A stretch of 63,803 bases of DNA, the filler included, from Hausera hauseri (Eukaryota), in the NCBI GenBank assembly GCA_046269625.1. It is 11 parts of 11 records of this genome, joined end to end, with 100 filler letters (N's around TTAATTAATTAA, not from the genome) between each part and the next. Parts side by side here need not be neighbours in the genome. Positions count along the whole stretch, not along the records: positions 1 to 10,472 come from JBJURY010181083.1; 10 more parts are not named here. One strand, written 5' to 3'. Both the position numbers and the translations under genes were made by a program. The notes under the pieces are model-generated. The model did no database searches, had not been told where the DNA came from, and saw nothing but the letters and a program-made list of their open reading frames with translations. Within the stretch, counting starts at the first letter, position 1. The number at the start of each line of letters is the position of its first letter. Below, one piece after another: positions 1 to 10,472 of the stretch.

Positions 1-708
1 AAGGATGGTGTAGCGAATGCATACTGTTGAATGCTTGCCTTTGCAATGATGGTGCGAGAATTATTACGGAATGACCTGATTTGGAAGTGTCTAAAGCCAC
101 GCCGTCAAAAACTGTGCAAGACTTGAAAGAATTAAGCATGTCCTGAGGTGGCTGGTTCTGTTGGAGTTGAGCTTGCGTAAAAATCGGTAAAAAATTAATC
201 GAACTAACCGACCTAAATAAAAAATCGGCAACCAAATTATTAACCCCGTTAATATGTTTCATGTCGAAGTTAAATGTCGACAAGTATTATATCTGTCCTT
301 CTTGGCGTGTGAAAGGATATTTCATAGCCATGATGTTAAGTACGGGTTTGTGATCGATTTGTATAGTAAAATGGCGAGCTACAAGTATGTGAGTGAAATG
401 CTTTAAAGCAAGAACGATGGCCAATAACACTCGATCGAACGTTGAATATCTGGTTTCAGGGGATGTTAGCTTACGAGAGAAAAATTCTAGCGGTTGGTTT
501 TCTCCTTTGTAGATCTGGTGGAGTACAGCACCTATAGCAGTAGTTGAAGCGTCAGTAGTAAGGATAAGTTCTGCATCAGGCTTGGGAAAAGCGAGAATGT
601 CGACGGTCTTAATTCCTTCTCAAAACTTATGAAACTTGTCAACCAACTCAGGTATCCACTAGATTTGCTGATGTTTTTTGCCACCGTTTAAGTGTGCAAA
701 TAGTGCTG

Positions 709-1450
709 TCAATTCAGAGCAATATGGTAAATATTTATGCACAAACTGTAGTGTTCCAAGGAAGCTGCGCATGTCAGTGGTCGTACGTGGTAACTGGAAA
801 TTCTTAAGTGCTTCAACTCTGTCTGGTTGCGGGGAGTGGCCGTCTGGTGAAATAACGTGGCCCAAAAGTTGATGCGCTTTTTGAAAAAATGGCATTTGTC
901 GAAATTAACTTGGAGATTATGGTGGTTAAGGCGTTGGAATATTGCGTAAAGGTGTTTCTCGTGTTGTTTGGCCAAAGAGAAAACGAACACAGTATCATCA
1001 ATATAAAGGTGTGCAAACGGAAAATCTGAGAGAATTGAGTCGATATGTCTCTGAAAAGTCTGTGCGACATTTCGCAAACCGAATGGCATAAACAGGTACT
1101 CGTAGAGGCCAAAAGGAGTAGTAACAGCAGTCTTTTCTATGTCTTCGGGTGCAACTGGTATTTGGTGGTATGCTTTGGCTAAATCGATGATCTCATAAAT
1201 GGTAGTTGAATTAAGGCGATGCAAGATATCCTTGATGAGTGGTAAGGGGTACGAATCCATGATAGTCAAGTTGTTTAACTGTCGGTAATCACCGCATGGT
1301 CTAAAAGTTCCGTCCTTTTTTGTACAACATGTAAAGGTGACGACCAAGTAGATTTGGAATGGCGTACAATGCCGGAGCGTTCTAGTTTGAGGAATTCGGC
1401 TTCTACGGGCTGCCTACGACGAGATGACAGTGGTCGTACCTTTTGTCATA
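709..1450 (-). pseudogene. Reverse transcriptase of the gypsy element (frameshifted)
   Basis: ORF 709-1347 carries gypsy RT motifs (DSYPLP, MPFGLRN, YIDD) and continues in another frame in 659-895 (LLGHVIS...MRSFLG). Confidence 0.93.
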
Positions 1451-1837
1451 TTGGTCGTTGATGCTGTGCAATTATGTAACGCACAGTACTGTTTGCAAAA
1501 GTAAACGTACGATCTTTTTTGAGTACTCATGGACATGATGTGTTGATGAATTGCTTTAGAGTTGTCGGCAACTGTGAGGGATTCGGTGAAAATGGTGAAA
1601 CGGCTTGAGTAGTAGCGGATGCAATTTGTAAATTGTTTGGTAATGTACGGTCAAGTGGTATTTGGTGTAAGATGGTCGAATTGAAAATGGTGCTGGATGA
1701 AGTGATTTCGTCGAGTGAATGAACATTGGTGACAGTACCAGAATTGGCGACATCGAACCTCGACTGAATATCAATATTCTTATTTTAAAATTTACGGAGT
1801 GAAATATTACGAAAAATCAAAGTAGTGTTTGTTTTTG

Positions 1838-2314
1838 TCAAAATTGATCTTCGCGTCTCGATCTACCGCGCGGTAGTCGAAATGTATTGACATGCTCAAC
1901 AAAGCTGCTAGTGATGCCGCTCCTCATACATAATTGACAGCAGTTAGCCAATAAATTATAATGTGATAGAAAATCGGACCCTAAAATTGCCGTCTGGACG
2001 TTAGCAATTGTGAACGTCCAGTGGAAAGGTGAAGGAAATTTTGGTAAAATAAAAGATAGCTTAACCATGCCAGAAATGTGCAGCGGTTGACCTGAAGCGG
2101 TGTATAAAGGCTTGATTTTGAATGATGAATTCTGAACAGGAAAGGTTTGTGGTAATAAAGAAATAGATGCACCTGTATGAATGAGGAAATCAATGTAATG
2201 CGTTGTAGAAGCGGTGATTGCAGCCTTCAGAGCAAAAACAGCAAAAGAGGCGTGTCGGCTTGCAAAAAGTGAAGTAGTGCCTTTGCCAGAGTTTGCCGTG
2301 ACTTCTGGCGGCAA
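1838..2314 (-). pseudogene. Retropepsin-type aspartic protease of the gypsy element
   Basis: FLIHTGASISLLP...LYTASG...WTFTIANV...ILGSDFL; homologous to FLIDTGSALSLLP in 55126-55815. Confidence 0.88.
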
Positions 2315-2316
2315 AT

Positions 2317-3401
2317 TTAGTTTTCTTGAAAAGGCGAACTAGGACGACTATTAGAAGAAAAGGTAGTACGTCCATCGTTCGTATCTGGTTTGAAAGTGCA
2401 GCCTGGAATGCATTTACCAGCTTGATTTTTAAACTTTGCGTGGTAAATGCAAACAATAGTGTCTGAAGAAAAATTTTTATTATAAAATTTGCACCCTAGG
2501 CAGCACTTCTTGGTATTCTTATGGAATCGGCTGTAATAGTAGCAGACAAACAACCGCGCAAGCAATGGTGACCGGTTTCTAGATGCGGAATTGGCGAGGT
2601 CCGCGACAAATTCCCTTCGTCGGGAAAGGAAAAGTTCATTTAATTTGTTGTTTAAATTGTTGATTGTTGCTTGTAGTGCTGTATTTTCGGCACGTAGCTG
2701 ATTTAGTTGTTGCTCTGTTGATGTGTTGTTGTTTTGGATATCGGAGTGGCAACTGCCGCCGAAACGATTGGTGGGAAATTTAAGTGTATAACGTCGTGTG
2801 TTTTATCGGCTAATTCGGCAAATTTCTCAAGCGCCGTGGAGTCATCCACTACGGTAAGTAAAGCCCGATTTTGGATGGGTAACGCGTTGAGAAAGTAGTG
2901 GCGCAGTAGTTCTGGATTGTATTCTTTAGTGACGCCGAGAGTGCGTAAATGTGTTAAAGAAGTGCGTAAAAATTCTGATGGTCGTTGTGTGCTTATAGTA
3001 TTGTAGTGGAAGAAGCGTTGTATGATGGTGTCCATTGAGAATTCTGTGATTTTAAGAACAGCGTTGGAGAGCTGTGAGTATGAGTCAGGTAGTTTTAAGA
3101 TTTCAAGCATGTTGTGAATTAGTGTTTTGATATTGTTAGGAAGTAAGAAGAGGAGGTTGTGCGCCTTGGTTAAGGAATTGGTGTTATTGTTTGCCTGTAG
3201 CCACAGTTGATGGAATTGTAACCAAGTTTTGCTGGAGCCTTGGTTGTCAATGAAGAATTCGGTGCAGTTAGGGAAAGGAGCGGAAAAGGTAATGGGTGGG
3301 AGGTTGCTAGCAGGGGTAGGAATGGGTTTTAAAAGAAATATAACAGGTTTTGGTTTTGTGATGGTTTTATCCGTGGTGTCTATGATTGGCGATGAATTCA
3401 T
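2317..3401 (-). pseudogene. Gag (capsid-like domain plus two CHCC-type knuckles)
   Basis: WLQFHQLWLQAN...YSQL...QRPSEFL...FLNALP pattern aligns with the gag at 54189-55040; sits upstream of the protease. Confidence 0.85.
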
Positions 3402-3606
3402 GCCACCACGGATACGGAAATGTATGTGGAGACAAATGTAATTTAAGAAAGATGGTATGGTTCCGCTGAGGGGTATTATAGAACCGTTATGAGTTAGATA
3501 AAAATTGGAAGTTGAGTAGGTAAGAAATGAAGGTACGAAGGGTTGGAATATGTAAATGTGATGTAGTGAGTGTGTAAATGTGTGTATTATTTATGAAAAG
3601 GGAAAA
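3402..3606 (-). pseudogene. Ubiquitin-like domain fused to the Gag N-terminus (one frameshift)
   Basis: Manual translation: FSLFINNTHIYTLTTSHLHIPTLRTFISYLLNF/(frameshift)NFYLTHNGSIIPLSGTIPSFLNYICLHIHFRIRGG, directly in frame with Gag MNSS at 3401. Confidence 0.72.
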
Positions 3607-3739
3607 TAGAGAGGGAAGAAGTAGAGTGCCTGGGGACGTGCTGTGGGGCCGACGCAAAAGGCGAGGCCTGACCGACCAGCGCAAGGTTGACGGACAGGAG
3701 CTCCGCCCCGGCGCGACAGGCCCCAAATTGCAGGGTGGC

Positions 3740-4238
3740 CGAATCTCCCCTCAAAAGTGCGGCCATATCTTCAACGTCTTTAAATAGACCGGACTCAATC
3801 ATGTATTTAATGCAAAGACAATGTATCGATCCGCTGTGTCCATTGATTTAGACTCGTCCAAACGCTTACTGGCTAAATGGCAATTCCCAGCATCGTAATA
3901 AATACGACCTTTCAGTGCATAGAAGTCAATTAGAGTCGGTGTGGGATATAGCTGGTTTTCAACGAGCTCTAAGGCATCCAAAACTCGACCCATATGACTA
4001 TATTGTTGTGCCAACAGATGAGTAACAAATATTTCGGCCGTCGACGGTTCGATCTCAGCATCGACACCTTCCAATGTCTGATATTCGTAAATGTTACGTT
4101 TGTATGTTTCGTAGAGTGTCCCTAGACTATCGACCTTTTCCATATGTAATGTTAGTGAGTGAGTGAATGAATTTTGTTTCAAATTAATTTTATACAACTG
4201 GATTTTGAAATAAAGCCGTAATAAGGTCGTAGCGAAAG
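3740..4238 (-). pseudogene. NAA15: Fragment of the N-terminal acetyltransferase A auxiliary subunit (NAA15/NARG1)
   Basis: [21 protein letters not shown]...[20 protein letters not shown]...[14 protein letters not shown], then after a frameshift [17 protein letters not shown]. Matches NAA15 as recalled (EPPTTLLWV.YYLAQHYD...TPTLIELF..KAKIYKHAGN...DTADRFINSKCAKYML). Preceded by a 48-nt GT..AG intron-like segment at 4239-4286. Confidence 0.82.
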
Positions 4239-4290
4239 CTAAAATTATAAAAAAGGTAAAATTATTATCGTCAACGTTAAAATTACCAAG

Positions 4291-7200
4291 TCGTTCAACT
4301 TTGCTTTCGACCGACACTAAATCGGATTTTATTGTCTGTGCCTGACTGATGAGAGTAGCATATTCCTCCGTATATTTGGCGATACTGGCTTCAAGTTGCT
4401 TGATGAGATTCTCGGTTTCTTCCGCTTTTTTCTTGTTCACTTGGGCAGCTTCAGTTAACTCGGTTAATTCATTTCTAAGGGGTTCAACTCGTTTTAAAAT
4501 ATCGGCATAATTGACTTGAGCAATGACCCATTTTACCATCGGTCCACATGCATTACTAGCTTTGTTAACTTTTTCAAAATTGAAATCCGCGTTGCTCAAA
4601 TATTTCTTTTTCATTGTGTCACGTATGGAATCAGTGATGTCGTCAGTATTGAAATTCAATATATTCTGAACAAAATTATCTTTAACTATGAACTTGAGAA
4701 CCGATGTCCATTCCGCAGTTTTTTCTCCCAATAAAAAACATATCGCTTCTACAGCCATCTTTACCAATTGTGGAGGATTTTTCATAGCTCTAATTTCCTG
4801 AATGTCTTTCTTGCGAATATTCTGCACAGCCTGCTTGGCATCGTTAACGGATGGCTCGACTTGCTCTAGCTCCAGATTAACAGCTCGTTTCTTTTCATTA
4901 ATAAATTGCTCTTGTTTAACCAACTCTTCTTGTAATTCCTGATTAGTTGCCTTACGTTGTTCTGCCTCTTGCTGATCTTGAACCATCTGTTTCAACTTTT
5001 GATTGGCAGCATTGTTCATTCTTTCTAATTCTTCCCGTTTGCTGTTCAGAGATTTCTGTAATATTTCTACTTGATCGACAGTTTCTTGAATCTTTTTCAA
5101 GCCATTATTCAAATGAAGTTGTTGCTCTTCTAAATCGGATCGCTTTTCCCCAGATAATTTCATATAATGCGCAATAAAATCAAGATAATGACGAGGAGTT
5201 ATTGTAGCTGTGTGGCCTCCACGCTTGAGCACTCTAGTATTTGCTTGGTGCATTGTCTGATGAACAAATACTAATGCATTTACAATAGCATCTCGATATG
5301 TTGGCATTTCGGGTAATAAACCTTCCACAACATATGGCATAGTATCAGGCAAACGATAGCCTTGCCTTTCTAAATCTAATCTTGAAGTGAATTCTTTTCC
5401 AACTTGGAAATATGCCTCAAGAGACCAATCACCGAACCAATTAAGAACACATCTGTTAAATAAAGCTGGAGACGTACTTGCTCGATCTTTTAAGCCTTCA
5501 GAAGAAGGATTCATTGTAAAAACAACATGCAAATTTCGACATATTTGTTGAGTGAACCATTTATACAATTCTTCTTGCGAGTCTATCATTAGACCTTCAC
5601 GAATGGCACCTTCTTTACATTGAGTCATTAGGGTTGTCAATTCGTCACCTTCAAATAAACCAGGGACTTCACCATTTGCAAGTAATGTATTTATTCTTTC
5701 CAGAAAACTTGAATCCATAACGTTAGATTCATCCATGATAAACGTAATCTTTTCTCCTTTACAACCTGCTCTTCGAAGAACATTCCTTAGGTCTTCATCA
5801 AAATCCTCAGCCGTATACTTGTTGTGAACTTTAACTTGAAATACACTGAGACCATTAATCCAAGATACAAATCTAGATAATGTTGTTTTACCAGCTCCGC
5901 TGATTCCAATAAACAATAAATGACCTTGAGGTTGTCGAAAAACTCGATCTATTCGCAAAACATGATCTAGAACTTGGTTGAAAAGAACCAAAGGAACATC
6001 CAGCTCTTCTTCATAAAAGATTTTCAATCGTGCTTTGACGTATTCACGAAGTTCCTCCTGATCAACTGGACTGTAATCCTTACTCAACCAATTACTATAC
6101 AAAATAGGTCTATTTAGAGCTTCTCCTTTATTAATATTGGGGAAATGTTTCATTGCAACTGAATCAATTTTTGCATCTGTCCAATGACGTTCTTCGTCTT
6201 CAATTAATCGATCTTGGAACAATCTCAAAGCTTCATGAGCCCATATTCGTACTAAACCTTCAACTGACAAAGATTCTAGTGGTTTCAATGCTTCGTGAAT
6301 TCCTCTTACCCATCTTGTCATTTCTCGTGGACTATAGATATAATGAGGTTGCATATCTTGAGTAAAACGATCTTGAGTCTTCAAAAAAAACTCTACCATT
6401 GCATTTGTCAATGTATCGGCATAACCTCGAAGAGATGGCAACATTCTTAACATCGCTCGATTAAATGTACCGTAGATTTGTTTCAATGACATTTCTCCAG
6501 GATAATCAACATACACCACTGGAACGTGTCTTAAAAATCTGTGACTTAATGGTTTTCGACCAGGATCTGTTGGAGGATTACATGCACCAACAAACTGTAT
6601 TCGTTCGAAGCTTACCCATTGCATATCAGATGTTCGGTAAAATCCATGATGTTCAACCATTTGTCTCAGAAAACTAATTACTCGTTGAGTACCATATTTA
6701 TCCATATCTGGAAGATTTATCTCGTCACAGAAAAATATTAGCCATTTGTTTAATTGTTGAGGGGTTAAAATTATTCCATTTGGAGTCTTTCGATATTCAC
6801 AGTACTGATCGAATGTTTTCAGCATCAATTCTGGTGTGGTAGCACTGCTAAAGTTTAATCCAACAACTTCCATGTCTGGCAAACTTCGAAGAGCACTAAA
6901 CAAAGTCATAGTTTTTCCAGATCCAGGTGGTCCACATAAAAGAACTGGTCGATGTTCAGCTAACCAAGTATAAAGCAAACTCTCGTGGCGAACTGTATCC
7001 ATTGTCGGTACTACAACATCCGTTGCTGTTATTTTATGCGTCTCTATTTCAATCTGTGGTACTTTCTGCGACCATGGAACCCATGCTCCTTGGGATGTCA
7101 CTTCGAAATCAATAACATTTCGACTACCAGTAACTCCAATATTTGGCAAATCAATTGTACAAATTTCTCTAATATAACTACTCATTTCTTCACGAACCTT

Positions 7201-10200
7201 CAACTTGCTATCACCACTCATACTCCATATGATAGAAGTAATCAATGATTTTGAAACAAAACTTTCCAATTGCTCAAAACTTAGCGGAAAATCAGAATGC
7301 GTTTGGTTGTATTCGATCACATTTCTGATGACTTGTTTGATCATCGAAATCATGCTCGTCAGCGCACGAAGTCTAGTGAAATCCATAATATGTTCCAAAG
7401 TAGCTGCATAATCCAGACATTTTACAATAAGGCCATCTTCAGTAAAATACTGAGCCAAAATAGCAGAAATCTGTTTCTGTAATTGGAAAGTCGGAGAGCT
7501 TAAGAGATTGGAATCACCTGTTTCTTTATTTCGAATAATTTTACTTGCGCCTGGAAACTCTTCCTCGCTTTCAACTACAAGTACTTTATTAAGTTCGTTT
7601 AAGAAATGTGTCAAAATCATTCCGGCTGTTAATACATCTTCACTAAACCATACCATTCCACAACGTGAAACTGTTGCCAACGTAGCATATTTTAAGTCTT
7701 GTACTTCGAACATTATTCTTACATTGGGTGGAATTGCTAAACGTTCACCATTTGGAAGAGTAAGCAACTTATTATCGTCTAACACCGAATTCAAGTTTTC
7801 TACCCATTCTGGATCAACATCCCCATCGAAAATTATCCATTGTCTCTTGTTACTTTCTCCGCGAACACTGTCGATAATTTTCCTTAAAATATGCGTAAAT
7901 AGTCCATCTGTCCATTCTCGAGTATTTTGATCCATAAAACCGTATAACGAATCTTTACTGATAGATTTTGGATCAATGACATGTGCAACACCTTCGACGC
8001 CATCGATATTTTGCAAGGCTTCTAACAAAACTTTCCAAGCCATTGTTTTTCCACTACCAGAAGGCCCAACCATCATAAGACCATGATGAATTGTAGTTAT
8101 CTGATAAAGTTGGAGAACCTTTTCTACCCAAAGATTGCCTGGTGTATTTGGTTCGTCACTGTACACTAAGAAGCGACTCAATGAAACTTTTTTCAATTCA
8201 TCGCGAAGTTGTTTCATTTGACCTTGTCTGTACTCTACACCCGGGAACACGTCCGATAAAAGAGAGTATAAAAGAGGAATGTCATCGGCAATTAACTTTG
8301 GAACCACTGTCTCCATCACTGACTGAATTAAAATTTCTTGTTCTGGTAACTGCTCAGCGATAAGAGATTCATTTACTTCGTCTCCCTTTTCAAGAATCTT
8401 ATCCTTGATTTCGTGTATTCTATCTCGCTTAACATTTCCTGCTGACACAAGCACGCTCTTCAAAGCTCTTAATCCGAAATCGTAATGTGACTGAGGAGAC
8501 AGCTGCTCGTCACAAAGTTTGAAGAATGGAACAATTTTTCCTGCCAAAACTTCAGCAGTCCTGAATCCTTGTGAATATAACATGACTTGCGCAATCAACT
8601 GACGATCTGGCTGTGTCATTGCCAAAGATCTAAATAATTTTTTAAGATTATCTGGTAAGTTTGATCGACCAGCATATCCTGGATTCATTGTTATAAATAT
8701 GGCCATATCTGGATTAACATGAACTTGTTTTCCGAGTAATTCTACAGTAGCACTGTTAGTTTTAGTTGTTGCTAATTCTCTTAATGCTTCTTGAATGCCT
8801 TGGATTTGTTGAGAAACGGCTGACAACATTCTCTCCTCCAATCGATTGAATTCATCAAAGCAACCCCAAGCACCAACTTGACAAAGACCAACGAAAATTC
8901 TACCCATTGCCTGAAAATCAAATGTTTCGTCGCAGTTAAAGACGAGAACGAATCTTCCCAGTTGATTTCCAAGAGACTTCACTGATTCTGTTTTACCTGT
9001 ACCCGCCGGTCCAAATGGTGATCCTCCAAGTCTAGCTTCTAAAGCCTGGGTCATTGTCAAATAACATCGATCAGTCAAAGGTGTTTGTACAAGACGATCA
9101 CAAACACCAAGGTATTCAAACCCATAATAAAACTTCGCATTGGCAACATGAATGCTTAATTGATGAAGTGGTTCAGCTTGCTTCGGATCAAAAAAGAAAC
9201 GCATTTGACTCATCCAGTCGAAATTTTTGTTTGAATTAACTCCATCATTGATAAGTGTTCTCAAAACATCTCGCTGATGAACATGTTCTATAATTAAATG
9301 CTCGAGCTTTCTTCTTCTGACTGCTGGTTGATCATAGAGAACGGTGTCAGCCAAAACGTTAAGAGTGTTGAGCACTGTGTTTAAAGCTCCTTCTAGATTA
9401 ACTCCATTTGCGAGATTTGATTCTACAGTTTCTGACCAGTTGACCTGGGCTGCCAATACAACGATTTGTACTTGATATTTATCAAGCCAAACCATGAACT
9501 TGTCTTTATCAACATTGGCATCACTTCGCCATCCCGATATTTCTTTAACAGCAACATTCAGATATTTAGCAAGAGAAACTCTCATTTCCTTTTCAATAAG
9601 TGTTAGCCAATCATTAATTCTTGGATTTTCAATAACTGAAACTGGTGATACGAAATTTAATTCTTCACCTTCTTTGGACATCATTCCAGTTATGACAGTT
9701 TCATCTTCGTTAAAAATTATTGAATGTACACCAGCAAACATTTTCTTAAAATGTTTTTGAAGCTTCTTTAAATCTTTACTGTTTCCGATAATTTCCAACA
9801 AATCTTCATCACCAACAAAGTAAAACCGAGGAAATGAAGATCTCTGTCGTTCAAGATATTCTCCGAGGGATTTCTGAATCTTTCCTAACAAATCAGCAAG
9901 TCTTTCTAATTGTCGTTGTACATTTGGAATATTCAGTACGTCCGTTACCAGAGGCGATTTGGAAACTTTTTTCATTAAGCCCAAAAATTCTGTGCATACA
10001 CTTTGGAATCTCTGGGATTCAACAGGCAACAGAACTTTAATATCAGCAGATCCAGCAAATATGCCATCAAGATACACCCATCGTCGTTGAACATCAATCC
10101 ATATGTCAAATAAAGCGTTTATTTTGTTTAATCTATCTTCCCATGCCAAAGCTTCTTCTTCAAATTGTTTGAAATAAGGCGATGCCTTCATACCCGTGAC

Positions 10201-10472
10201 ATTATTGATGTGTTCCTTTACTTTATTGAACAAGTCATCCCAACCTTTGATAATTTTACATTTCGCCTGGTAATTCGTCAGCTCAAGCACATAATTTTTC
10301 CAAACTTCTGTGATTTGTCGTAAATATTCTTCGAGAGCCTTTTCCCCTTGAGCAATAGCCAAAACGTCACGAACTGCCTCATCATGCTTGAGTAAGTCCA
10401 CATCCCAGAGACGACCCAACTGCAGTTCTGATAAAGACCAATTAACATTAAGTTTTCTCATTAACATTCGCC
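4291..10472 (-). CDS. DYNC1H1: Cytoplasmic dynein 1 heavy chain, partial (linker, AAA1-AAA4, stalk/microtubule-binding domain); no introns or stops in ~6.2 kb
   Basis: P-loops [32 protein letters not shown]; [62 protein letters not shown]. Homology stops at ...VESKVER (4291); 5' end cut by the gap. Confidence 0.97.

Follow-up and report, generated by a model that had tools for sequence, protein, structure and literature searches.

A worn ubiquitin-like domain ending in Gly-Gly directly precedes Gag in a Ty3/gypsy-type retroelement of Hausera hauseri and in many of its relatives

The DNA analysed here (the window) is a stretch of 63,803 nucleotides from Hausera hauseri (GenBank assembly GCA_046269625.1), in which 11 parts of 11 records are joined by filler; its first part (positions 1 to 10,472, from JBJURY010181083.1) carries a decayed retroelement with Gag and Pol on the minus strand. 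The 72 codons that precede the Gag start of this element are a worn ubiquitin, and the Gly-Gly that ends it lies exactly at the Gag start. We consider it likely that this segment, hereafter called the ubiquitin-like domain (UBL), is the remnant of a ubiquitin-derived N-terminal domain of the Gag polyprotein in a broad Ty3/gypsy lineage with Gag of the DUF7041 type, and we infer that host deubiquitinases cut the polyprotein after the Gly-Gly. The evidence described below supports the UBL-GG-Gag layout as an old inherited feature of that lineage.

Translation of positions 3506-3402 on the minus strand gave NFYLTHNGSIIPLSGTIPSFLNYICLHIHFRIRGG, of the form NFYLTHNG...LHIHFRIRGG, and the ATG at 3401-3399, directly after the Arg-Gly-Gly tail (3410-3402), opens a Gag open reading frame (ORF) of 232 amino acids. 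The original prediction had quoted this string and the Gag ATG behind it exactly. The tail, FRIRGG, is of the ubiquitin type, with a C-terminal Gly-Gly and an R-L-R-like lead-in. The N-terminal half is read in the other frame, which from position 3606 gives FSLFINNTHIYTLTTSHLHIPTLRTFISYLLN (quoted previously as FSLFINNTHIYTL...LRTFISYLLN). One upstream frameshift had been proposed, and alignment with 29 copies of the element located it as a loss of 2 bases after position 3512, which are present in 100% of the other copies; the alignment also uncovered a break that had escaped mention, a surplus base at about 3594-3602 that is private to the window copy, shifts the N-terminal half of the UBL relative to the frame of the upstream leader, and creates a TAA at 3587-3589. 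A private loss of 1 base near 2745 truncates Gag. With two private indels in the UBL, one in Gag, and a Pol full of stops, the window's own copy is dead.

The genome comprises 868 Mb in 909,086 contigs, and neither a repaired frame nor a consensus was used in the analysis. The window copy belongs to a family (family A) that numbers more than 1000 members with about 83% similarity among them. A complete element is about 5.4 kb in length with the order Gag-protease-reverse transcriptase (RT)-RNaseH-integrase, and complete copies (L031, L032) add RT_RNaseH_2, Integrase_H2C2, and rve in gypsy order to what the window retains. Given the RVT_1, RNase H, and integrase domains in Pol, the element is therefore, judged by its Pol sequence, of the Ty3/gypsy type; its protease had no match in Pfam. 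Of the 29 fetched copies, 9 have an open stretch of 72 codons ahead of the Gag ATG, in the Gag frame and without internal frame shift; in 4 of these 9, the open stretch reaches 123-173 codons upstream. The copy L015 has a single open frame that runs from an ATG at the 5' end (MDALLRG...) through a 50-codon leader and the UBL (...RGG/MNSS, the slash marking the junction) into a Gag of 326 codons. The window copy, L013, L015, and L016 begin at, or within 3-5 nt of, ATGGCCGCAC. The leader, the motif VGQ(A/T) of which is common to family A, a second family of this genome (family C, see below), and the public protein P0001, is probably an N-terminal extension of the polyprotein. This G+C-rich leader had no match in Rfam and no unusual fold (z -0.3), and a ribozyme or structured-RNA reading of it was dropped for these reasons.

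Two other families with the same layout were found in this genome with a back-translated FYLHLNG pattern. Family B (about 70 candidates) reads M[FV]TI.YKFNEQI...FYLHLNGLV...SVSFRGRGG/TNPLDQ, and family C (about 100 candidates) reads ...FYLHLNGFLLHPTDD...ITPRLFGG/SDINSD. The window UBL had previously been matched to a domain called contig-10; this is a family-B sequence (L079, G000:C140094), and its reading ...NEQIYSLQ...FYLHLNG...SVSF*VRGG/TNP contains the strings just as they had been quoted. The Gags of families B and C align with that of family A through FF[IL]DNQ..., TWLxFHxxWL, and TEPS.D.II, with the GG in the same column, and the family-A Gag lies more than 1 substitution per site from the other two. 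Identity of the UBL between families is 18-24%, and the surface residues of ubiquitin are not conserved. The ORF of family B begins at the ubiquitin Met (MFTIFYKF or MVTIAYKF), with stops just upstream. Neither family B nor family C has a Met at the junction, and the first downstream Met is inside the conserved Gag core; therefore, Gag of these two families must be translated through the UBL.

The relatedness of the UBLs was evaluated, as the original prediction had proposed, by pairwise alignment against shuffled sequences. Natural intact family-A UBLs were compared with families B and C and with two public relatives, P0001 and P0002, using only naturally open copies, 1000 composition-preserving shuffles, and no frame repair. 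Family B gave z-scores of 5-6, family C one of 5.6, and P0001 and P0002 scores of 8-12 (11.7 for P0002), and in each case none of the 1000 shuffles reached the observed score. The family-A UBL also gave z of about 6 against P0017 and P0008, which themselves have z = 13-15 against ubiquitin; the direct comparison of family A with ubiquitin gave z = 3-7, chiefly from the tail (LHIHFRIRGG versus LHLVLRLRGG). Profile alignment with hhalign joined family A to family B (P = 2.9e-4) and family B to ubiquitin residues 2-64 (P = 4.9e-4).

AlphaFold2 (AF2), supplied with an alignment restricted to natural copies of families A, B, and C, predicted the ubiquitin topology for a natural intact family-A UBL, with a mean pLDDT (predicted local distance difference test) of 86 and a pTM (predicted template modelling score) of 0.71. 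The model has strands at residues 2-8, 11-18, 39-43, 46-48, and 60-67 and a helix at 23-34, which is the beta-beta-alpha-beta-beta-beta order of a beta-grasp UBL, and ends in a floppy RTRGG tail. The top 50 Foldseek matches of this model in the PDB were all ubiquitin, ISG15, SUMO, or parkin-UBL at a probability of 1.00, including the C-terminal domain of ISG15 (E = 2e-4, TM 0.75-0.78) and ubiquitin (TM 0.76-0.78). The same topology was predicted for the family-B UBL (pLDDT 77.5).

A profile spanning the UBL and Gag (A6) was searched against 1.84 billion protein representatives. Among its 68 matches, one was polyubiquitin itself (P0048, E = 2e-4) and the other 67 were Gag relatives, drawn from ENA, JGI, or Logan assemblies. 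In 32 of the 67, a UBL ending in GG stands 15-50 residues before the Gag core, and at this homologous site the domain ranges from a nearly canonical ubiquitin at one extreme to a degeneracy like that of family A (P0001, P0002) at the other. Against a local ubiquitin hidden Markov model (HMM), P0042 scored 90.9 bits over positions 1-76, and P0058, P0062, and P0008 gave 2.8e-8, 1.4e-7, and 8.8e-6; all four alignments run to HMM position 76 and stop there, at the junction. P0058, P0062, P0008, P0017, P0019, and P0037 are intermediates, and P0073, found with P0058 as the query, has a near-canonical C-terminal half. Pfam ubiquitin matches below threshold stand beside DUF7041 in P0017, P0037, and P0062, and precomputed annotation gives PF00240 together with PF23055 for P0058 and P0073. 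The near-canonical ubiquitin of P0042 at the same site leaves room for re-capture on top of old inheritance. A word-index protein search returned nothing for the family-A UBL+Gag query and only three proteins for the P0058 query, and scans of JGI metagenome contigs gave no loci. It is hardly credible that a G-poor 5' untranslated leader merely happens to read like ubiquitin. Although none of the families A, B, and C has a match at the HMM level, and the T/C/A-rich stretch has few stops in all three frames, coincidence does not account for the significant shuffle tests, for a fold prediction and fold search that lead to ubiquitin, or for a junction in register in three families and 32 public relatives, near-canonical ubiquitin included.

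We compared 35 junctions, namely those of the 32 public relatives and one representative tail each for families A, B, and C. Positions P2-P1 are GG in 35 of 35, P4 is Leu or Ile in 33, and P5 is Arg or Lys in 28. The residue after the GG (P1') is Ser in 16, Met in 6, Gly in 3, Thr in 3, Asn in 2, Ala in 2, and Asp, Val, or Gln in 1 each; it is never Pro. An R/K-L/I-x-G-G tail, the GG itself, and a P1' residue other than Pro are the requirements for cleavage of ubiquitin fusions. By analogy with such fusions, host ubiquitin-cutting enzymes probably release Gag. Translation would start upstream, at the ubiquitin Met in family B and at the 5'-end ATG in family A, where a leader of about 50 residues would come first; host deubiquitinases would then cut after the Gly-Gly as they do in polyubiquitin and the ubiquitin-ribosomal-protein precursors, and the Gag set free in this way would have a defined first residue, never Pro and in most cases Ser, Met, Thr, or Gly. 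The ubiquitin part could serve as a folding or expression aid in cis or as a first processing site operated by the host. An additional N-terminal leader of 15-130 or more residues precedes the UBL in family A and in several relatives. Met follows the GG in P0001, P0010, P0017, P0023, and P0030, in all of which the called ORF spans the UBL.

The same junctions bear on two other views of the domain. In the first, the UBL is translated but left uncut, and stays on Gag as a built-in ubiquitin signal, recruiting for instance ubiquitin-binding factors of trafficking or budding, or a shuttle to the proteasome. Experimental fusions of ubiquitin to Gag affect the release of retrovirus particles, and ubiquitin fused in this way can replace late-domain function (PMC2958808); the fold, moreover, is kept in the UBL. 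The fusions in that work resemble UBL-Gag in that ubiquitin is covalently joined to Gag, but they are artificial, uncleavable, and replace late domains, whereas the UBL is natural, N-terminal, and has an intact cleavage-type tail. A retained signal gives no reason for the invariant GG at the domain end, the R/K-L/I-x-G-G tail, and the Pro-free P1', and the surface residues of ubiquitin vary across the families; we regard this view as rather improbable. In the second, the released UBL is itself active, as an element-encoded modifier that is conjugated or as a decoy that blocks host ubiquitination with its exposed Gly-Gly. Cleavage would indeed expose the invariant GG, and some large DNA viruses carry a ubiquitin of their own. 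The ubiquitin-eL40 gene reported in PMC11499249 is one example. However, the low identity between families and the loss of surface residues are unexpected for a substrate of E1 and E2, making an active modifier very unlikely.

When the Gag tree was computed with the UBL columns left out, the presence or absence of the UBL required 10 changes, compared with 24 for shuffled labels, and none of 500 shuffles was as low. The UBL-bearing rows fill several deep clades that are more than 1 substitution per site apart. Three UBL-less rows inside UBL clades (P0007, P0025, and P0039) are N-terminally cut fragments, and 21 UBL-less Gags of the DUF7041 type form one clade. The UBL-less DUF7041 Gags (PF23055, animal retroelements) share a homologous core and a homologous double zinc-knuckle region with the Gags studied here, but they open directly with Gag and have no UBL-GG module. 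The window Gag itself had no DUF7041 match in Pfam, and a family-A ORF (L034:2096-3019) matched DUF7041 with E = 0.0015 at 19.4 bits, below the cut-off of 28; profile A6 retrieved proteins that match DUF7041 strongly, among them P0017 (109 bits) and P0062 (47 bits). The Atlas lists DUF7041 clusters mostly from arthropods, which we take as a lead only. Many of the public Gag ORFs (P0001-P0068) have a conserved ...KN as their last residues, immediately behind the second zinc knuckle, and this end may be a conserved Gag stop, readthrough, or frameshift site.

Selection was assessed in 30 family-A copies by comparing shared variants at codon position 3 with those at positions 1 and 2. Gag showed diversities of 0.114, 0.089, and 0.195 at positions 1, 2, and 3, with shared variants at 54 of 233 third positions versus 22 of 467 others (p = 1e-12). 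The corresponding values were 0.131, 0.141, and 0.166 for the UBL (18/72 versus 22/144, p = 0.06) and 0.157, 0.162, and 0.216 for the leader in the Gag-contiguous frame (15/48 versus 15/96, p = 0.027). With leader and UBL combined, diversity was 0.187 at position 3 and 0.147 at positions 1 and 2 (33/120 versus 37/240, p = 0.005), and rotated-frame controls gave p = 0.86-0.98. The ratio of nonsynonymous to synonymous polymorphism (pN/pS), determined for natural open copies, was 0.32 for the UBL and 0.49 for Gag in family B, 0.62 and 0.41 in family C, and 0.58 and about 0.53 (noisy) in family A, for the UBL of which the off-frame controls were 0.71 and 1.05. The UBL is clearly under coding constraint in family B, and the constraint in family A is weak but detectable. 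The sense strand of the element in the window (1-3617) is strongly depleted in G: the UBL has 6%, Gag 11%, and Pol 15-17%, compared with 21% in the host fragments alongside, a pattern that would fit a pressure towards G-to-A mutation in the element. All 13 UBL columns in which at least 70% of family-A copies have G are codon positions 1-2, namely those of Gly45, Gly52, Arg, Asp, and Cys codons and the Arg-Gly-Gly tail, and at the codon positions of this tail G is kept in 97-100% of the copies. The original prediction had described the junction as old, selected, and not a one-off capture. For the lineage, an old junction that is no one-off is supported by three families in this genome and 32 of 67 public relatives; the evidence supports "selected" more firmly for the lineage than for family A, where selection is weaker, or for the window copy, which is broken.

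Several observations weigh against the view that the family-A segment is a ubiquitin-derived domain from which Gag is cut. Natural translations (11 of family A, 5 of B, and 3 of C) had no match to Pfam PF00240 at E up to 10, and a search of the PDB with the family-A UBL profile was empty; hhalign of family A with ubiquitin covered only the last 11 columns (P = 0.008). The matches of the family-B model were weak (Foldseek E >= 0.28, VIA Z <= 5), its VIA list consisting mostly of beta-grasp domains and its Foldseek list mixing in other small folds. Acidic residues are all but absent from the family-A UBL, which has 0-3 Lys and 4-9 His; deubiquitinases may no longer recognise such a make-up. Taken by itself, this UBL shows no significant constraint, and its signal falls far short of that of Gag. 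The copies begin only 0-5 nt before the upstream ATG, leaving no normal 5' untranslated region, and family A has no Met at the start of the UBL but has one right after the GG, from which it could make Gag without the UBL.

Taken together, such observations could mean that the family-A UBL is a fossil, with Gag starting at the junction Met, the 120 codons upstream being a drifting leader, and the layout functional only in the relatives. The placement of the ATG, the third-position signal of the UBL compared with that of Gag, a pN/pS of 0.58 beside off-frame controls of 0.71 and 1.05, the scarcity of G with its skewed residue make-up, and the empty Pfam and PDB searches all agree with this. However, the third-position excess of leader and UBL is frame-specific; the retained G is confined to codon positions 1-2, as in Gly and Arg codons; and length, frame, GG, and the confidently predicted ubiquitin fold are kept although Gag has diverged by more than 1 substitution per site from those of families B and C. 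Moreover, the five relatives named above, with called ORFs that include the UBL, likewise have a Met after the GG. We consider a fossil UBL unlikely in family A, and prefer the reading of the segment as a translated and probably cleavable N-terminal domain.

The UBL-Gag layout resembles that of the ubiquitin-fusion precursors (polyubiquitin, ubiquitin-eL40/UBA52, and ubiquitin-eS31/RPS27A), copies of which belonging to the host were found at L037-L039. Both have an N-terminal ubiquitin-type domain, an R-L-x-G-G tail, and a partner that follows directly and never begins with Pro. The precursors start at the ubiquitin Met, as family B does, whereas family A has a leader of about 50 codons instead; in contrast to the precursors, the partner here is a retroelement Gag, and the domain is far diverged, to the point of having no Pfam match in families A, B, and C. 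In cytopathogenic pestiviruses such as bovine viral diarrhoea virus (BVDV), host ubiquitin is inserted in the polyprotein and processed by host ubiquitin hydrolases. BVDV is likewise a mobile RNA-based genome with a captured in-frame host ubiquitin, at which a host enzyme sets the N-terminus of the downstream viral protein, as it would here for Gag; the BVDV insertions, however, are recent, sporadic, strain-level, and near-identical to host ubiquitin, while the UBL is inherited across deep families and mostly degenerate.

A ubiquitin ending in GG upstream of a retroelement Gag was also present in BEL/Pao-type ORFs of the same genome (L043-L066; for example L050:1-2862:+ and L056:3-2006:+). These ORFs have PF00240 at about 70 bits (...RLKGG/SELTAEELEDR...), a coiled-coil, and a DUF1759 Gag. 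They differ from UBL-Gag in Gag family and superfamily, in the good conservation of the ubiquitin, in the approximately 130 coiled-coil residues between the GG and the Gag core, and in the 200-500 residues before the ubiquitin. Their ubiquitin is probably an independent acquisition, which suggests that the ubiquitin-Gag fusion arose more than once. A first look at the genome gave 847 ubiquitin candidates. No report of a ubiquitin-Gag retroelement fusion was found in searches of open-access full texts, a coverage that leaves subscription journals and Repbase notes outside.

Accessory domains fixed in retrotransposon polyproteins are rare but informative, known examples being chromodomains, an exonuclease, and methyltransferases. 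By analogy with the cellular precursors, UBL-Gag may be viewed as the Gag of a long terminal repeat (LTR) retroelement with an accessory module that would work like a ubiquitin-fusion precursor, and it is the module that would be new. If this is true, the elements hand one maturation step to the host ubiquitin system, with the GG setting the first residue of Gag. The relatives would in addition provide a graded set of natural ubiquitins, the closest about 80% identical to that of the host and the most distant unrecognisable by sequence, that apparently keep fold and tail and would be useful for asking what deubiquitinases need.

A possible route for the capture of ubiquitin is indicated by the flanks of the elements. 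Family-A copies adjoin intronless fragments of host genes in the same orientation on both sides. The 5' partners seen were dynein+NAA15, PRP8-like+NAA15, another ORF+NAA15, a long NAA15 piece, alpha-tubulin, and a PP-binding protein, and the downstream partners were a nuclear receptor or an RRM protein. The joint between NAA15 and the element is common to at least 10 other loci, which differ 5' of the variably truncated NAA15 piece. Upstream of the UBL in public relatives, Rrp44+CNOT1 were found in frame by Pfam, and pieces of histone H2A and an HSP90-like protein were recognised by eye from the sequences. The host-mRNA/element joints look like the product of RNA-level copying with 5' template switching; alternatively, the assembly may include RNA-derived material. 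Such 5' template switching would also offer a credible way for ubiquitin to have been first captured in frame. A wider proposal, which we put forward tentatively and hold to be slightly less probable than its opposite, is that the ubiquitin-GG module belongs, as an ancient accessory domain not described before, to a wide gypsy clade with DUF7041 Gag and, through independent acquisition, to BEL/Pao-type elements with DUF1759 Gag; that host deubiquitinases act as the first processing protease; and that the host-mRNA 5' mosaics show the route of in-frame capture.

The features of the window are collected in Table 1.

Table 1. Features of the element and its host-gene flanks, in window coordinates
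Feature	Position	Strand	Remarks
Dynein heavy-chain flank, cytoplasmic, intronless	4300..10467	-	One open frame of >2000 codons, ends in stalk
NAA15-like flank (N-acetyltransferase A auxiliary subunit), intronless	3770..4150	-	NatA_aux_su 2.5e-20
Retroelement	~3769 down to 1	-	Runs off contig at position 1
Terminal ATG	3764..3766	-	Extreme 5' end of element; in frame with leader, UBL, and Gag in naturally open copies
G+C-rich leader, ~50 codons, MAALLRGDS...LVGQASPFAS...	3618..3766	-	
UBL	3402..3617	-	72 codons in intact copies; broken in window
Arg-Gly-Gly tail (cgt ggt ggc)	3402..3410	-	Predicted cleavage site between 3402 and 3401
Gag ORF, probably of DUF7041 type	2703-3401	-	232 aa in window; 326 aa in L015
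Decayed Gag/Pol remainder	1..2702	-	Zinc-knuckle region, putative protease, RT, RNase H start
RT	709-1347	-	RVT_1 1.2e-28
RNase H, start only	287-430	-	RT_RNaseH 1.7e-7

In the window (3770-10467), the dynein fragment is followed by about 60 odd codons, the NAA15-like piece, and the retroelement, all in one orientation, with the NAA15-like fragment abutting the 5' end of the element. Paralogues of this dynein/NAA15/element arrangement occur on other contigs (L031, L017, L008) and are 88-92% alike; the dynein stalk domain is present in the paralogous locus L031. The 5' flanks of L004, L006, L022, L033, L035, and L036 have the same NAA15 joint with varied 5' partners. An NAA15 origin of the first 25 nt of the element was dropped, because family C has the same AAL(L/F) start with a different flank. 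Element copies abut alpha-tubulin or the PP-binding protein in the same orientation at L032:8848-9324 and L034:1321-2262, and at L032:2050-3372 (-) the zf-C4 DNA-binding (4.5e-23) and ligand-binding domains of a nuclear hormone receptor lie directly downstream of an element copy, again in the same orientation, and mark the genome as that of an animal.

The ends of the element were examined in three full-length copies of about 5.4 kb with different flanks. Self-BLAST of their contigs revealed no direct repeat at all, hence no LTRs, and local alignment of their termini against shuffles gave no significant direct or inverted match; an inverted terminal repeat seen by eye was not significant and was dropped. 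No tRNA-complementary primer-binding site was identified in the element, with no comparison made to this genome's own tRNAs. Near the 3' end of the element, at a distance of about 115 nt, is a purine-rich run, GGGGAGGTGATGTGG. The complete copies L031, L032, and L034 are ragged over about 25-30 nt at both ends and have no poly(A); they are shaped like element RNA and not like a provirus. At L033:2978-3098, the 3'-terminal 120 nt of the element is inverted beside another copy, pointing to a nested or head-to-head insertion.

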